A stretch of 63,253 nt of DNA, the filler included, from Lenisia limosa (Eukaryota; Protista; Breviatea), in NCBI GenBank assembly GCA_001655205.1. It is 16 parts of 16 records of this genome, joined end to end, with 100 filler letters (N's around TTAATTAATTAA, not from the genome) between each part and the next. Parts side by side here need not be neighbours in the genome. Positions count along the whole stretch, not along the records: positions 37,547 to 42,898 come from LPNZ01005378.1; 15 more parts are not named here. One strand, written 5' to 3'. The translations under genes and the position numbers were made by a program. This document shows, piece after piece, positions 7,311 through 43,090 of this stretch (its first letter is position 1; each line of letters begins with the position of its first letter). The notes beneath the pieces were generated by a model that searched no databases, was not told the origin of the DNA, and saw only the letters and a list, made by a program, of their open reading frames with translations.

Positions 7311-10300
7311 CTGGATCCAAGGGGCGTTGTAATCATGGTACACAAACGTTGAGGGGAGGGCTCCTTCAACCACCTAAAAATAAGAGAAAATTAGGTGAAA
7401 ATTGAAAGAGAAGCAAATTACAACTGTCATCATAAGATATAACAAAGTAAACCATAGTGTTTAGTACATACGATAAATAAATAATTAATAAAGTTTTATA
7501 TTATTGTGCACTTATTATACATATCATATACTATCTCTTATTTGAACCAATATCTAAATTCAAAATAATCCTCCACTCATTTAGGCCCAAAAATGAAATC
7601 CCCATTCCCCTTCCCAAATTCATAAAAGACCCCTCGCCCTTCCCTAACCTGCACCAGAATAGTAATCAGAGAATTGGCAATTCCGGTATCCGAGGCTGTC
7701 ATGCCAGTGATGGCCGGGAGGGTGACAGCCATCACGCTCGGGTCACGGTCGCATAGGGCCTGGGGGGTATATAATATGTAATATATCATATTATATGATA
7801 TATATTATATATATGTATATGTAGTAATATGTAACAATGAGAAAAAAAATAATAAGGTAATTTGATCGAAGCCGTCCACACCAACACGCTTATAAGAGAT
7901 ATTAGAATATAATATAATATTAATTCACTCAATCATTTGCCTTACAACCCTGTGTACACAGATTTCTGCGTGTCTCCCAGCATACCTATATAATATACTA
8001 TACATTTATATTACATTATATCATATGTATCATGTTTGTAGTATCATATGTGTTACATATCATCAAATTTTAGGACCTCTTTTTAATCATCATACAAATG
8101 GCTATAACTGCGTGTGCTGTGTTAAAATGATATAGCTATATACATGTATCTGTATGTAGTACATGCATATGATGTACATGTATATCAGCTATACAATAAA
8201 GCCTAACTTTGTTGATGATGACACGAGCGGCTTTGTCCGTCCTCAGACTAGGCTTCAGAATGAGGCATCTGTTGAAGAGGAGAACCGCTTTCTTGCGAAT
8301 CTGAAGGCGGAATAAGAACTGTCAAAAAAAAAAANNNNNNNNNNNNNNNNNNNNNNNNNNNNNNNNNNNNNNNNNNNNNNNNNNNNNNNNNNNNNNNNNN
8401 NNNNNNNNNNNNNNNNNNNNNNNNNNNNNNNNNNNNNNACCATCACAGCGCTCTGTGGAAATTGAAAAGTTTATTTTGAAAGGAAACTCCCACCATTGGG
8501 CTTTCATGGTCCATTAATCCGGCAGCCTTTTGGAAGAACATCTCCGCGTTCTCATCGGTAACCAGGAAAGTGAGGGACGTAATGGCCTGGGTGGTGATTG
8601 ATGGGAAGACTAATAGGAAAGTGGGAGACGATGGCGCAAAATTAATGTCAGGGGGTAGGGGGGGGGGGGGNNNNNNNNNNNNNNNNNNNNNNNNNNNNNN
8701 NNNNNNNNNNNNNNNNNNNNNNNNNNNNNNNNNNNNNNNNNNNNNNNNNNNNNNNNNNNNNNNNNNNNNNNNNNNNNNNNNNNNNNNNNNNNNNNNNNNN
8801 NNNGACGTCAAAAGGAGCGTCTTCTCGTTTTCCGGATCAAGGAACAAGGAAACTGCCATGTAGCCTGGGGGAGGTGAACAGATTAACTGACTTTTGGAAG
8901 CTGGGGAATTAAGACGAAAGAGGAAAAGAAGGTGAATTACGAATCATGCCTCCATCATCATATCGTGACCGTGATGAGTCTTGTTGACCAGCATGTTTCA
9001 GAATCCCCTTCAGAAAAATTGGTCACGATAATATTATGAGGTTGATATAGTATGCTAATTTGTAGCTGTATAAAAAAAAGGATAGTAGATCTTCACGTTC
9101 TGTTTGAATCAGCATAGAAAATGCCTGTTTTTCTTAGAAGTGAGATTGCCTTATATAACCCAGCCTACCAACAGACTTGTCCGCCACTTTTGTGCTCTGT
9201 GTGAGGTTGATTGCAGGCACCCAGGCGCGAGGGACCTGAGAATTAAAGCTGCTCTATTCATAAATAACCACTGGATCGATCCAAATTTCGAAAGAGACTT
9301 TATTGCAAAAAAACATATTAACGCTTGCAAGAACCAAAGTAGCTATTCCACTTGAATGTATGAAACAGAAAAAATATCACTGTAAGATACAATATTCCCA
9401 ACGGTCCCAAAACAGACTGAAGTTTTGAAACATAAAAACAGCAAAAAAAACGTATCCTATCATAAACAAATGATATAATGTGTTATGCCAATGGTCCTGC
9501 CAACCTGGTGCCCCATAAGTTCGCAGAAGACAGCTCGGAGGAACATGTCTCTTTTGTTTGTCTGTGGGGGGGGGGGTAACACAACATGTCCTTTTTCTTT
9601 GTCTGTGGATATGCATATATAATTANNNNNNNNNNNNNNNNNNNNNNNNNNNNNNNNNNNNNNNNNNNNNNNNNNNNNNNNNNNNNNNNNNNNNNNNNNN
9701 NNNNNNNNNNNNNNNNNNNNNNNNNNNNNNNNNNNNNNNNNNNNNNNNNNNNNNNNNNNNNNNNNNNNNNNNNNNNNNNNNNNNNNNNNNNNNNNNNNNN
9801 NNNNNNNNNNNNNCATATAGTATATCGTTTGTTTGTTGACTGGGATAGAGAAAAACTCAACAACATTCAAAAGGACCTCTTGCTGGAGGGGTCCACAGAT
9901 TGAACATGAAAGCATTATAACTCAGCAACTTTAAGCATGCTCTCCAGCAAACCTTACTGGTCAGAGGTTGCTGAAACTGCTTGTCAAGCAAACTGACCTC
10001 GTCTGAAAGTAAGCAATGGGCGGAAATGATAATTATTAACCTAGCCTCTCTCTTCCCTTTGTTTTACTCCCTCACTCTCCAGCAATATCCCTCACTCTCC
10101 ATCAATATCCCTCACTCTCCATCAATATCCCTCACTCTCCATCAACCTCTTGCACACTTCATTTCACCCCCTCACTTTTCATTGTTGCAATTTCTTCTGA
10201 ACGACTCTTACATTCCGACACCACATTAATCTAAAAAAAATGAGCTGCTGTCAATCACTATTGATGGGGATGAGGGGGATGAAGTTTTATGACACAGATT

Positions 10301-10639
10301 GGAACATTTAATAGTTTTATTGGGAACTGAACTTTCCCCCATTCATTTTCTGACAAGAAGTAAAACAAGCGCTTCTATTCCTTATAGCAAAGAGCATGTG
10401 TTCATATAAACTCATACCATGTGTTATCATTCTTAGGATATCAATAGTCTCAGGCATATACAGTGTCTGAGAAAAAGTTTGAATCCTGTTTAGAGAGAAA
10501 TCACCACGTATACGTGGAAGAGTAGTGAGTTTACTAACCCCAAGTAAACGCTGCTTGTTTCTCGCTATATCACTTATATACAATGAAATCGCAAAGGAGC
10601 TGCATGGAAGGGGCTTACAAGGTGGGGAAGTTCAGCCAT
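7311..10639 (-). CDS. AP4E1: AP-4 complex epsilon adaptin, N-terminal part
   Basis: MAELPHL|DSNFFSDT|INVVSECKSRSEE...; RDMFLRAVFCELMGH; GYMAVSLFL; IRKKAVLLF; ALCDRDPSVMA; VVEGALPSTFVYHDYNAPWIQ match AP-4 epsilon trunk motifs. Confidence 0.92.
7835..7987 (-). repeat. Family A repeat, full length, in an AP4E1 intron
   Basis: Aligns to 2436-2590 and 40000-40151; begins AG|GTATGC on the minus strand. Confidence 0.9.
10069..10145. repeat. Intronic minisatellite, 20-nt unit x~4
   Basis: CCCTCACTCTCCATCAATAT tandem copies in an AP4E1 intron. Confidence 0.9.
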
Positions 10640-11169
10640 TGTGAAGGATCGGCAGGTCCACTACTTCAGAATCACAGCTACTACCACAAATAATAATAAA
10701 AAACAATTAAGCAAAATAACGAACAACTCTCTCATCAATTTTGATTGTGTTGGTTGTCTTCTCCGGTGTCTCCGGCGCCGTAATATTTTTTCGACTCCTC
10801 CAACAGCTCCAATCAGCTTATTCGCTCTCGCATAAACCGAGCTTAATGCAACTAATATGCTTTCTGACTTTCTGACCGCCACATGTCCATATGTTATGTT
10901 CAACACAATGATTTATTGAACAGTGAAAGTCTCCAGTTCCAGATGAATAAAGTACATTCAGACTCCCTAAACAGCGACTCAGTTCTTCAGGAGTGGAGGA
11001 GTCCTGATCAGTCAGTTGAAGAAGAGGTTGGTATATTAAATATTTTCTGACAAAGATATTGGTACATCANNNNNNNNNNNNNNNNNNNNNNNNNNNNNNN
11101 NNNNNNNNNNNNNTTAATTAATTAANNNNNNNNNNNNNNNNNNNNNNNNNNNNNNNNNNNNNNNNNNNN

Positions 11170-37446: not shown

Positions 37447-37568
37447 NNNNNNNNNNNNNNNNNNNNNNNNNNNNNNNNNNNNNNNNNNNNTTAATTAATT
37501 AANNNNNNNNNNNNNNNNNNNNNNNNNNNNNNNNNNNNNNNNNNNNCCCCCATGACCCCTTATCCAAG

Positions 37569-37970
37569 ACCGGGTAACTCAAACTTTTCAGAGTTTCATC
37601 AACACTGACATTTTCAGGGCAGAGGAAAGCGACCTTGACAAGCTGACTACGCCACGTGATAAGATTTGCGCCATGCTTGGCGTGGACCCCCCGAAAGTAC
37701 GTGGGGGTTTTGGTAGTCTATCATGACATCTTCCTGTTTTGTTGGACCCACCCTGAAGAGTTATCGGTTACGATATAGGTGATTGTTCACAAGACGGGAG
37801 CCAAAACGAAGGCAGTAGCCAAGTCTGCCGATACCGGTACTTATGCTGGTTGGGGGGGGGGGTATTTTGNNNNNNNNNNNNNNNNNNNNNNNNNNNNNNN
37901 NNNNNNNNNNNNNNNNNNNNNNNNNNNNNNNNNNNGTTTGACAGGCGTATCGATAGAAATTCGATCATAA
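37569..37970 (+). CDS. Hypothetical protein, 3' end
   Basis: RVTQTFQSFINTDIFRAEE...GVDPPK|VIVHKTGAKTKAVAKSADTGTYA|GVSIEIRS-stop with compatible phases. Confidence 0.5.
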
Positions 37971-38454
37971 CATTTACCATAAAAGATATTATCTTCCCAT
38001 TCTATTGAGAAGGCTTCTTCGACTACCTCATATACGTTTACCTATTTCGGACCTTGACTTCTTCAGATCTTGTTCGCGATTCTTATTTCTAGACTTCTTG
38101 TTGTATTTTTTTGTGTATTTAAGGTACCATGTAGTTCGTTCTGATGTCAAGGCATGTTTTACGTATCTGTTTTGCATACCAACAGCCACCTTGTGCTTCA
38201 ACTAAATAATTCCGGAAACAACACACATTCACACGATTTACACAAACTATACCTACTAAAAATCTAATTGAAAACAACTAAGCAATACCATTCTTATGTT
38301 TTTCTATTTTTCCTCTGTGGAACCTGCGAAGTTAGAGAGAAACCCAGGCTTACCACTATTTTGACATTATCCATGATTGACACATCTGAAGTGTTTACAA
38401 CATTAAAATTGTATGGTGGGGAAAATTCACATCTCATCCTATTCTTCGTCTACC

Positions 38455-41400
38455 GATCTCACCCACCATCTCTGTCATGGTCATCATGGCGATGGTGCCT
38501 CTTGACCTCTGTGCTGCTGGTATAAGGCCATCGTCTGCAAAGGTCGTATTCACCTGGGGGATTAATGATTTAACTGTTAGATTAATGAAAATGCTCAACC
38601 AAGTGATATCCAGGATTGTGTAATTTAGAATTCAAACAATCCCAATGTTAACAGAACTCTATTTAAGTTCAAATTTGTCAATTATCTTATGCCACTTACT
38701 CTCAGGGTTAAGCACCCATTGAGTGTGTGCATTGGTGTGCAGCAGTGAGAACAAGTAAGGCTTCTTCAGCCCGTGGATTGCCACATTATCACAATGACAA
38801 GACTGAGAGGGGGGGTAAGCTTCTGAATTATAACCCATGTAAATTTTGGTTCCAAACAGAGTTTTACAATATTGGCCACCGTCCGTCATACCAAATGGAT
38901 ATTGAGGCGATCATCAGTGACAAGGGTGGGTGGCGACTTGATGCAAGCGGTTGCCATGCCTGGGTCAATATTAATGAAAACAAACCCTCAAAGGCACATA
39001 TCATATGATTTAAATGGAATATCATACCTAGTATATTGAGATGGCCACCTACCCATCCAAACATCTTCGAGTGGGAATGGGGGCCACGATGTCAGCGTTT
39101 CTAGAAATGACTCCAACTCCCTACAGTAGATGTAATTTTTGTCAAACCCAAAAAGTCAGTATTATATCGTTCGGGAATAAATATCTTGTAGATTTTGAAA
39201 GGACAAAAATGTGTTTGTCGTAAAAACATTCAGTAAACTTGGTATACAGAGTCAAAACTTGGCATACGTTTCAAACCGAGCTGGACGTCTCCTCCATTTT
39301 CTTTGGTTTCTCAGCGAATTGCGTGTCAGCTCCATGGCAATCTGAGAAGGGAGTAACACACACAAAACTCAAATATTATCGTTTCTCATTAAAAAGGAAA
39401 TAAGTGAAGAATCGTACCGGATAAATATCAGTTACCAAGTCCCGAGATAGGATGTACCCGGCTCCACTGAGCACTCCAGGTCCTGTGGTGTCACAAATTG
39501 TTTTTTGGACGAGTTAAGAATAAAGCTCCGATATCATTCTAAATACTACATAATAGTATATTCCCTCATCTCACCAGAATCTAGCGAATACGCTTCATAA
39601 GGGATGTAATACTTGTCCAAAGGCTCACGGTGTGGTTGGTAGTTAGAACTAAAAGAATTCAAAGTTATTGTGATAAGTATATGATAAACTGACGAACTTA
39701 TCCAAAATAACTGATTGAACTATTCTCCCACTCGATCATTGATCCATAAAACAATCGGGTTGAATTCATGCCCTCAAGGATTCCTTGTAGCTTTGGGATA
39801 TGCCACCATGCATCATCGTCCGTCTATGCAATGAGTATCCTATCATTAATTGTGTACCACCCAGGTTAGTAAGAATTTTTAAACCGTCAAGAGTATATTT
39901 CACAAATAATTAACATCAATGGTGTATCAAGTGAGCATATTTAGCAGTTTAGGTTGGCTAAATCATTGGGCTTTACTTCTGTTCAGACAAAGTATATTGC
40001 AATGCGAAAAAAAATAAAGATGTGTCTGGCCGAAGCCGTCCACACCATTACGCTTATAAGAGCTATTGGATTATAGTATAACATTAATCCACCCAATCAT
40101 TTGCCTTACAACTTGTGCACACAGCTTTCTGTCTGCCTCCCCCGCATACCTACAAGGGTTAGATTTATGAATAAGGACAATAGCCCCTGAATAATAACCC
40201 AGGTAGGCCCTCTTAAATCCGTCTTATGTCACAGATTCAGGAGGTGCCAGTGAGTTAGAATTGCAGACATCAAAGGTTTATAGAATAGTATTATCGTAAA
40301 TATTGATAACGTCCTCAAAGGAGAACAGATTATAAGGGGCTCAATGGTAGGACTAGGTCTCAGGTGGAGAGATCCCATAGTCTATGAGGCCGGTGAGTTT
40401 GCTTAGGAGAAGCGCCCTCAGGTTTGTTCGATGGGGTGTCATTAATGCAAGCTTGAATTTGAAGTTTAACAATATCGTTAATTTCTTGAAAATACGGACC
40501 AAAGTGAAACCCGAATTCAGCTTTCAGAATGCAAATGGGACAAGTGCCCCTCCCCCTTCACCTTCAGGAGATAGTTCCAGTTGTACTGTTGGGAGTAGGC
40601 CCATTTGATGATTTCAGCCGTCTTTTTCGTAAAACTCATGCATAGTTGGGGTTTCAAAAACGAAGTAAAAAGACCCATATCCAGAAACCTCGTTGACCAC
40701 ACTATAACTGTCAAACCACCTCACTTTGAGTGCAAGAAAATTCCAATTTTCGGGTTGGTTGATAGTAAGAATATCGCCGTGAATATCATTTTCAATTTGT
40801 AGTCGATTCCGTTGCTCAATGCAAGTATGTGATTCGGGATCTATGTAATGAGTTTCAATTTAATTGTAATAAAACCAATCATTATATGGAAATATGGACA
40901 CCTCACATTGTACACACTCTTTTGATAGGCCAATAACAAAGACGTGCGTGAAGCAACCCCTGGATACATGAGGTCTGCATTGGAAAACATACGTTAAAAA
41001 GTGAGATGAAAACATTGCATTCATTTGTTTACAGATTGTTACCGAGTTTGCATATGTCATGCCCATAGCATACTTGGTACCAGAAACAGACAGCCATGTA
41101 TCTCTGATCACTTGTCGCAGTATCAGGTTTTGGGGCATGGACAGGATCCCTTCAAATATTAAACGACCCTCGTGATCATTGAAGTTACATTGAGCAGACC
41201 TATGAGAAGGGAGCACTGTGGAGGGTGCTGTATTCGTGCTAAGTGGGCCATAGAGGGGCCTTCAATTGCAACGTCATGCATGTATTTGAGCAGTTCATTG
41301 GGATCATCGAAGACCCTTGGTCTGAGACGTATCATGTGTCGCTAAACAGTGAAATGGTGATAACTGAATTAACGGAATCACCAAACTGTCCTCTACGTAT

Positions 41401-42110
41401 ATGAACTGAAGTTACATAAACGGAAGCTTACAGAAGGCTTGACGTTTACGGGAATGGTGGGCCATGCGTTATCCTTGGTGTGTGCTGATGAACCTATCAC
41501 AGTCTGTGGCGTGATAATGATGAAGGTATATTTGACAAAAAAAGCCACATCACTGATATTTGGATATACAAAGGGGTGGATAAACAATAATTGAACCAAT
41601 CTCTCTTTCAAAGTGAATAGTTTTGATCTGCCCCACACCTGTATACGCGATGTAGGCTCACTTGAGTTGCTTCGTTGTATTCTTACCCACTTCGTGGGGA
41701 ATACATCTAAGAAATGGGAAGCATTTTTCATACAATTTGAATGTGACTTTGTCATTATCCAAAACAGTCAAACTAAAATACGCACTAGATGATATCCATT
41801 TCATATGTATAAACCCAGAATACCCTCAATATTTGCCTCGTCGAATTTCAAACGACATTCAGGCCGAGTCTCTATCATGCCGGTGTAGACCCATGTTTTA
41901 CCAGGAAGCAGATAGCCGCCTAAATGTACATGAGAAAAGGAACCGTCGCTTTGGGGCAATTTTATGCTTCTTCGTCAGCCAATTATTCACAAATATATCA
42001 TATATGATATGCTCTTCCAATTGAGTAGAACAGATCAGTTTTTTGAAACAGTAAACATAAATTGATTGCCTCCGGCTACCTTTGAGAACAAGAGACGCCT
42101 TTTCCTGGAA
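38455..42110 (-). CDS. Glycosyltransferase family 31 (beta-1,3-galactosyltransferase-like)
   Basis: GILSMPQNLILRQVIRDTW, HVFVIG, ENDIHGDIL...NFLALK, YLLK|TDDD, PHREPLDKYYIPYEAY, LSGAGYILSRDL, PLEDVWMG and AIHG are the GT31 motifs in order. Both ends uncertain. Confidence 0.85.
40000..40151 (-). repeat. Family A repeat, full length, in a GT31 intron
   Basis: Aligns to the other copies; begins AG|GTATGC on the minus strand. Partial copies at ~30815(-), 32422(+), 34845(+), 44890(+), 46130(+), 48225(-), 50160(-), 50440(-), 51655(-), 54862(+), 57208(+). Confidence 0.9.
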
Positions 42111-43090
42111 GATGATGACGTTGGTTGTTAGTAAAAAGATCAAAAGCACGAGAAAGTAGGGGCAAAGCTGTTGTATAGTGCTACAGTGTGAGTTTAAATG
42201 AAATACTTTCAGAGTTGTTGTCATTTGTCATTTTGAAAATATAACGGATTAAGGCTTACTAGTCAGATATCATAATTGCTAGATTTCATGAACCTCTTTT
42301 CTTTTGAAATAACTCACTGATGGGTAAAAAGAAGAAGAAAAGGTATGCTTGCTGTCCAGTTATACAGATTTAATAAAGTGATGGAACTTGCCTTATTGGG
42401 AAGAAGAATAAATTGTGATCTTTGATCCTTTGATTTTGGCCTATGATCCTTCTGAACTCTAAGCCGTTTACGACTCTCTTTTGCTTCAGAGGGATGTACC
42501 ATGCTTGTAGAATTGTGAATTTTTCTCTTTAGTTTGCATTAGATGTTGACAGTGTTGGGTCTCTTTATTTAATCTTGCTTGAGGGCAATTGTGCAATAGT
42601 CATTGTTGTTAGAAAGAGTTCTCCCACTCCTGGTTCACCAGTTATTTGCCCAACCAATGTTGGTGATAAAACCTTAAAACTAATTCAACCAGAGATTTCG
42701 TCAGTAGAGTAAGAAGTACGTTGTTATAGAGAAAAGCCGTAACTAGAACATTCGCTTATTGACGTAGAGGTGAAAATACATACACATTGAAGATACAAAA
42801 TTACATTAACAGCGCTTGTGCCCAATCTACTAGTGTACATGAATACATAGAAACCATAAGATCAGCCCAAACAGGCTAGTGCAGATGCGAGTAATCAGNN
42901 NNNNNNNNNNNNNNNNNNNNNNNNNNNNNNNNNNNNNNNNNNTTAATTAATTAANNNNNNNNNNNNNNNNNNNNNNNNNNNNNNNNNNNNNNNNNNNNTT
43001 ATAGACCTGTGGGAGGGTATGACGGTTATAGACCTGTGGGAGGGTATGAAGATATACAGAATGTCGGAATTTAGTACTCTGACGAACCAG

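Follow-up and report, generated by a model that had tools for sequence, protein, structure and literature searches.

The GT31 gene and its long intron

The DNA analysed here (the window) is a stretch of 63,253 nucleotides from Lenisia limosa (Breviatea; GenBank assembly GCA_001655205.1), in which 16 parts of 16 records are joined end to end with 100 filler letters between each part and the next. The piece from position 37,547 to position 42,898 (LPNZ01005378.1) contains a GT31 (B3GALNT2-like) gene, one intron of which is several times longer than the others and harbours a repeat that fits a retroposon of the short interspersed element (SINE) kind. The subject of this work is a motif inside the repeat, where a sequence resembling a splice acceptor is fused directly to a sequence resembling a splice donor. 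Positions are those of the window unless another sequence is named.

The gene lies on the minus strand. Its modelled part (38458..41199) was obtained by joining minus-strand exons from reading frames and GT..AG borders; it comprises 12 exons and 11 introns, and covers the gene without its 5′ exons. The joined protein matches the Pfam family Galactosyl_T (PF01762, 1.6e-20). The closest matches in protein searches were fish B3GALNT2 sequences with 28% identity, the matches being distant animal homologues only.

The intron in question (39824..40561, minus strand) is 738 nt long. It is preceded by an exon (40562..40621) that ends with ...NWNYLLK and is followed by the donor GTGAAG, whereas the exon downstream (39732..39823) starts with TDDDAWW, which includes the DxD motif of the transferase. 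In the homologues K and TDDD are contiguous, and zebrafish B3GALNT2 aligns through the junction as LLKTDDD without a gap. The entire segment from 40561 to 39824 must therefore be removed, and no hidden exon is needed. The original prediction had placed one intron of ~730 nt between ~40557 and ~39826; an intron of this kind was borne out, with borders a few bases away from those predicted. The outer acceptor region (39824..39871) contains TACTAAC at 39871-39865 and ACTCATTGCATAG, which ends at 39824. The remaining ten GT31 introns measure 66-156 nt, and the repeat-free modelled introns span 33-207 nt, as against 738 nt for the host intron. For the last intron of the gene, splicing was confirmed by a polyA-RNA contig (record 9). 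The polyA RNA run (X2) has low depth and covers only the 3′ third of the gene (38000-39475).

The fused acceptor-donor motif

Within the host intron the minus strand reads AATCTAACCCTTGTAG|GTATGCGGGGG; the TAG ends at 40150, and the GT begins at 40149. The motif (40139..40165, minus strand) consists of CTAAC (40162-40158), TAG (40152-40150) and GTATGC (40149-40144), and is followed by a run of G. The branch-like A of CTAAC is located 10 nt ahead of the AG. CTAAC..TAG|GTATGC had been predicted at this place and is present there. A further claim, that no exon separates the AG from the GT, agrees with the gap-free alignment to the zebrafish protein; a hidden microexon ending at 40150 was considered, and is ruled out by the contiguity of K|TDDD in the homologues.

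The AGGT at 40149/40150 is the sole AGGT of the 738-nt intron. A loose form of the site (YAG|GTR) occurred in 37% of 5000 dinucleotide-preserving shuffles of the intron, and a strict form (G at +5 and CTRAY ~6-48 nt upstream) in 1.5% of 5000. The AG|GT motif is thus uncommon for a single intron. The donor-like 14-mer does not occur a second time in the window beyond the site itself, and a search for repeats inside the piece gave only short two-copy matches of a chance-like kind.

A high-copy repeat occupies most of the intron

Contigs of a DNA-like sequencing run (X1, background depth 36) were placed on positions 38000-42898 at 80% likeness. The summed contig depth was 83 over 40460-40623, ~1,900 over 40296-40459, ~8,500 over 40132-40295 and ~113,000 over 39968-40131. 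Close to the junction it was 12,697 at 40166, 9,926 at 40158, 15,435 at 40144, 19,956 at 40143 and 31,900 at 40132-40133. The depth falls smoothly in the upstream direction with no break at 40149/40150, and the junction is spanned by contigs that come from other loci (records 3, 4, 12 and 13). The repeat in the intron is a near full-length copy (39994..40494, minus strand, in the sense of the gene), with ends good to ~15 nt.

Most of the family differs from the window copy at 40143, 40158 and 40166. The family sequence reads ...CTAATCCTTGTAG|GTATGCT..., with CTAAT where the window copy has CTAAC; the textbook CTAAC is private to the window copy. Among the variants listed, none at a frequency of at least 5% affected the AG|GT itself.

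A consensus was made from the window copy by inserting the majority letters of the family, and a ~90-codon open reading frame (ORF) crossing the junction was used as a protein query. It detected three ORFs in one ENA assembly with coverage as in X1, which evidently represents the same genome. The contigs carrying them (L001, L002 and L003) were later extended to ~60 kb. The three copies read ...CTTATTCATGA(A/G)TCTAATC(C/A)TTGTAG|GTA(A)TGCTGGGG..., and ~340 nt upstream of the TAG belong to the same repeat as the GTATGC. Locus-to-locus comparison found no homology between the flanks of the copies.

An nhmmer profile built from four copies returned ten matches. Nine of these share the 3′ end (profile positions 399-408) and start anywhere from profile position 2 to 353, whereas the tenth covers profile positions 56-233 only, which is the front half of a copy that has diverged and has lost an internal section. 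Expressed in window coordinates, the 5′ starts are at ~40494 (window copy), ~40481 (a copy in a dehydrogenase gene of L002), 40355 (L001 copy), ~40290 (second L003 copy) and ~40147 (an antisense copy, N474), and several 3′ fragments start at profile positions 321-353. In a diverged variant on the minus strand of L001 (3541-3338), ...TTTATGAATCT is joined straight to TGGTATGGA..., the middle with the AG|GT being gone. A scan of a metagenome with a 24-nt core of the repeat gave 0 matches.

The 3′ part of the window copy contains a hairpin (40014..40051, minus strand) with a GGC-UUCG-GCC core; after it come a T-run, CATTGC and a short tail rich in TA. The hairpin is located in the most abundant part of the family, where the depth peaks. 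Its predicted fold (-17.2 kcal/mol, z -1.5) was no better than that of shuffled sequences.

Target duplications and host introns

The L002 copy is located in a UDP-glucose dehydrogenase gene, in an intron of 402 nt (L002 1946-2347). The protein sequence ...YSRW|VDSKK... is contiguous across this intron when compared with the solved Caenorhabditis elegans enzyme. The copy is flanked by an exact 14-bp duplication, TATGTCCTTATTCT (2000-2013 and 2329-2342), and if the insert and one of the duplicates are subtracted, the intron measures 73 nt, which is a typical length in this genome. An 11-mer, TGTCCTTATTC, is common to this duplication and to the interior of the element (2176-2186), just upstream of CTAAT..TAG; the rough probability of such sharing by chance is ~1e-3, and it could reflect homology-guided choice of the target or an older fragment.

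The antisense copy (N474) resides in a ~230-nt intron of a gene on the opposite strand. It has an exact 12-bp target duplication (0 of 500 shuffles), which adjoins the tail ...GCAATAT. For the window copy two segments of the minus strand form a possible but weak target-site duplication: ACTTTGGTCCG (40495..40505) on the 5′ side and ACTTTGTCTG (39984..39993), which abuts the tail ...GCAATAT, on the 3′ side. They differ by one indel and one change and share 6 nt exactly, a similarity that is not significant. CTCATTGC is found both at the real acceptor of the host intron and at the tail of the element, a coincidence that is compatible with chance.

In all three modelled cases the splice sites of the host lie outside the repeat: ~67 nt and ~170 nt away in the window intron, and 54 nt and 5 nt beyond the target duplications in the dehydrogenase intron. 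The common 3′ end, the variable 5′ truncation, the duplications of 12-14 bp and the depth that rises towards the 3′ end are the marks of a retroposon of the SINE kind, and to judge from these features the element fits a SINE-like retroposon that inserted in a pre-existing intron.

Can the internal site splice?

Weight matrices were derived from 17 introns for which protein homology fixes the borders, and real donors were scored leave-one-out. The internal donor scored 13.2 bits, compared with a median of 5.8 and a maximum of 11.5 bits for real donors. The outer donor, GTGAAG, scored 6.7 bits, and it does not have the G at +5 carried by most donors here. The internal acceptor scored 6.5 bits (median of real acceptors 5.5 bits), and the outer acceptor 10.0 bits. 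Among decoy GT and AG sites of the 17 introns the internal sites rank in the top 2-4%. By the matrices, the AG and the GT singled out in the original prediction look like a competent acceptor and a competent donor. Most real introns have a branch-like yUnAy 8-13 nt ahead of the AG; the CTAAC at -10 therefore fits this genome, as does the CTAAT of the family.

The outer signals GTGAAG, TACTAAC and CATAG are all intact, so the intron could also be removed in one step. The strongest alternative to a functional site is that removal always uses the outer sites, the internal AG|GT being splice-like repeat sequence and nothing else. Besides the intact outer donor and acceptor and the perfect TACTAAC, several observations fit such an inert motif: the CTAAC is no more than a private change of the window copy, the family having CTAAT; polyA-RNA contigs of other copies read across the junction without splicing (records 12 and 13); and high-scoring decoy sites are often unused. 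The inert motif accords less well with the internal donor, which scores about twice as many bits as the outer one and is nearer to the acceptor, or with an internal acceptor that exceeds the median of real acceptors, and short-intron yeasts do split unusually long introns at sites of this kind. We give the inert motif an even chance.

RNA run X2 contained none of the sequence words of the locus, and the X2 depth seen inside the host intron comes from other copies of the repeat. With an internal acceptor above the median and an internal donor stronger than the outer one, removal in two steps comes out about level with removal in one. That two-step removal is a substantial path at the GT31 locus is, in our estimate, just short of an even chance, and the matrix scores and the branch spacing make the site a credible candidate for a zero-length exon.

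Origin of the AG|GT

Probably, the AG|GT is an internal sequence of the repeat, present throughout the family, and does not mark the place where a newly arrived mobile intron met an older acceptor. The insertion and the family-wide junction are taken as shown by the data above: a SINE-like retroposon of ~500 nt, in sense orientation, entered a GT31 intron that had been ~225 nt long, which accounts for the present 738 nt, and the interior of the element brought along a branch-like motif, a short pyrimidine stretch and a TAG fused to GTATGC and its G-run. For the splicing we infer the following route. The intron could be lost in two parts of 412 and 326 nt, as tandem introns on either side of a zero-length exon. 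Joining of the outer donor to the internal AG would recreate a donor as AAG|GTATGC, and joining of the internal donor to the outer acceptor would leave the first half as an ordinary intron ending in TAG|ACG. Either order of removal would give the correct ...LLK|TDDD... message, and because the AG and the GT are adjacent, the use of either internal site would be harmless. A motif that arose once in the ancestor of the repeat family, and was copied afterwards, calls for no separate event at the GT31 locus.

The preferred explanation has points that weigh against it. Clean target duplications were found for only two of the eight copies, that of the window copy being weak. The element does not end with a poly(A) tail, its tail consisting of CATTGC and a few TA. 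It gave no Rfam match at E<=1, and has no tRNA-like structure and no tRNA, 7SL or 5S head. Neither a partner long interspersed element (LINE) nor an ORF for reverse transcriptase turned up in the 65 kb read. The three full copies are an ascertained sample, since the query that detected them was itself an ORF across the junction, and the unbiased support comes from the depth profile and from the copies met by chance in ~60 kb. As to splicing, the weight matrices are based on 17 introns, two of which begin with the same GTATGC hexamer, and the single RNA run, the polyA metatranscriptome X2, has zero depth over 39476-39967 and from 40460 onward, the exons on either side of the host intron included.

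An intron of another gene bears on where the right-hand part of the element came from. In a MORN-repeat gene (Pfam MORN, 8.4e-18) an intron of 207 nt (L006 11339-11545) begins with GTATGCTGAGGAGGTATAGAGAAAGCTATG. Over the first 30 positions it is identical to the element, read from GTATGC on, at 24, and beyond these the similarity is weak. Aligned locally from its first base, the MORN intron gives p ~0.013, and the two sequences have an 8-mer at the same offset. At the least, the MORN intron shows that the sequence of the element from GTATGC on can act as a donor in this genome. Judged from this likeness, some introns may have an origin in common with the right-hand part of the element. No second intron with such a likeness to the element was seen in 65 kb. 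A G-rich run (GGGGAGG-like) occurs within ~15 nt downstream of many unrelated donors, and seems to be a signal of introns at large in this genome, not a marker of a family.

These observations could be explained by a composite progenitor: a mobile intron, corresponding to the part from 40149 to ~39994, would have landed after an acceptor-like site elsewhere, and the composite would later have spread as a retroposon, in which case the seam of the original prediction would be real but would have formed a single time, at another place. The MORN intron does start exactly at the homologous GTATGC, and with ~156 nt, the part of the element between GTATGC and the tail is as long as an ordinary intron of this genome. 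However, the MORN intron is the single one of its kind in 65 kb, its 3′ half is not alignable with the element, and nhmmer did not report it at E<1. A protein-word search for ORFs running from foreign sequence into GTATGC... yielded no candidate. We consider the composite progenitor improbable.

The weakest of the alternatives is the model of the original prediction, according to which a mobile intron ("family A") starting at GTATGC landed after a pre-existing acceptor of the GT31 gene and made two tandem introns at this locus: although GTATGC...GGAGG...AGAAAGCT also opens the real intron of the MORN-repeat gene, and the depth is about halved between 40143 and 40158, we regard this model as very improbable, because in all long copies sequenced, and by depth in hundreds of genome equivalents, the TAG, the branch-like motif and the ~340 nt upstream form part of this one repeat, the three other sequenced copies carry the same junction, the contig ends listed form no strong cluster at 40149/40150, the depth decays smoothly across these positions as expected under 5′ truncation, and many unrelated introns of this genome have such a G-run behind their donor. 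What stands of the model is that a mobile repeat delivered the site to the GT31 intron; the TAG and the GT arrived together.

Side observations concern intron structure in the two genes. GT31 introns 2 and 4 (40906-40841 and 39836-39824) both end with ACTCATT(A/G)CATAG. CTCAT is found 8-9 nt ahead of the AG in the MORN introns as well, and its recurrence probably represents a local branch consensus rather than shared ancestry. The same MORN gene has an intron of 33 nt (L006 11615-11647, GTAGGC...GACTCATGGTTTAG), placed on the basis of MORN repeat continuity only; as modelled, it illustrates the small size that introns of this genome can have.

Comparison with known systems

The nearest parallels are the zero-length exons of yeasts. 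In Schizosaccharomyces pombe one was detected by spliceosome profiling in the 336-nt intron of SPNCRNA.445, and in Cryptococcus neoformans one splits the 375-nt intron of BOT1 into 210 and 165 nt (10.1101/226894, 10.1101/224170). As in these cases, the GT31 intron exceeds the norm of the species several-fold and has an acceptor fused to a donor, the predicted parts being 412 and 326 nt, compared with 33-156 nt for usual introns. With the yeast introns at 336-375 nt, the size of 738 nt is no objection to a split. The yeast cases rest on spliceosome profiling, junctions, branches and cross-species conservation, whereas the site described here is predicted from sequence. The yeast sites are also locus-specific and conserved, in contrast to the present one, which belongs to a repeat with hundreds of copies.

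The ratchet points of Drosophila are found in introns of 11-133 kb, have branch points 21-36 nt upstream and are deeply conserved (Duff et al., 10.1101/006163; PMC8605326). They share with the GT31 site the juxtaposed AG|GT, by which a donor is regenerated after the first step. The GT31 intron differs from them in its length of 738 nt, in the position of the branch-like A at -10 and in that the site is carried by a repeat.

In the stwintrons of filamentous fungi an inner intron interrupts the donor, the branch or the acceptor of an outer intron, and removal in two steps is obligatory (PMC8469720, PMC9024468, PMC12403724). As proposed here, one intervening sequence comprises two spliceosomal introns, and some stwintrons have spread as similar copies. 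In the GT31 intron, however, none of the outer signals is interrupted, the internal pair being located far away from them, and the two units would lie side by side, not one within the other.

Introners are elements that are themselves introns, with splice sites at or next to their ends or in a short target duplication (PMC9860276, PMC3609843, PMC4457414). The present family resembles them as a high-copy repeat found in introns of unrelated genes. Unlike in introners, the splice sites of the hosts lie ~5 to 170 nt outside the repeat and one copy is antisense; the target duplications of 12-14 bp and the 5′ truncation are as for retroposons. The likeness is greater to SINEs and to 5′-truncated retroposons without long terminal repeats, in the common 3′ end, the variable 5′ truncation and the target duplications of variable length and more than 10 bp, as well as in the thousands of 3′ fragments and a conserved 3′ stem-loop. 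The element differs from SINEs in its tail, which has a few TA but otherwise neither poly(A) nor a simple repeat, in lacking a recognisable polymerase III head, and in that the 65 kb read yielded no partner LINE.

Possible significance and neighbouring features

As it stands, the event at the GT31 locus is an ordinary one, a mobile repeat with splice-like sequence located in an intron. A wider proposal would be that the retroposon family is a carrier of built-in zero-length exons, and thereby a genome-wide source of recursive splice sites; on the present sequence evidence we hold it to be doubtful. If it were true, a long sense copy in a short intron would split the enlarged intron into two introns of ordinary size, and since either internal site would still give the right message, the element could persist inside genes. 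Recursive splicing in short-intron eukaryotes is known from a few single, conserved loci. If the fused pair were used, a repeat that equips hundreds of introns with this device would show in what way sites of the kind can arise, and how a genome of tiny introns tolerates insertions that lengthen an intron several-fold. The family offers many natural replicates, with sense, antisense and truncated copies.

Some features were noted in the surroundings of the copies. L001 has an uninterrupted ORF of 583 codons (9199-10947) with no Pfam match. Two ENA gene calls in L003 (3510-3656 and 10444-11025) contain in-frame stops in both the standard and the bacterial code, which indicates another code or poor calls. 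In the GT31 piece a separate expressed contig reaches the upper edge (42822-42898). Towards the other edge a run of N (an assembly gap, 37870-37935) adjoins a run of C, and the sequence below it is richer in G+C (0.50).

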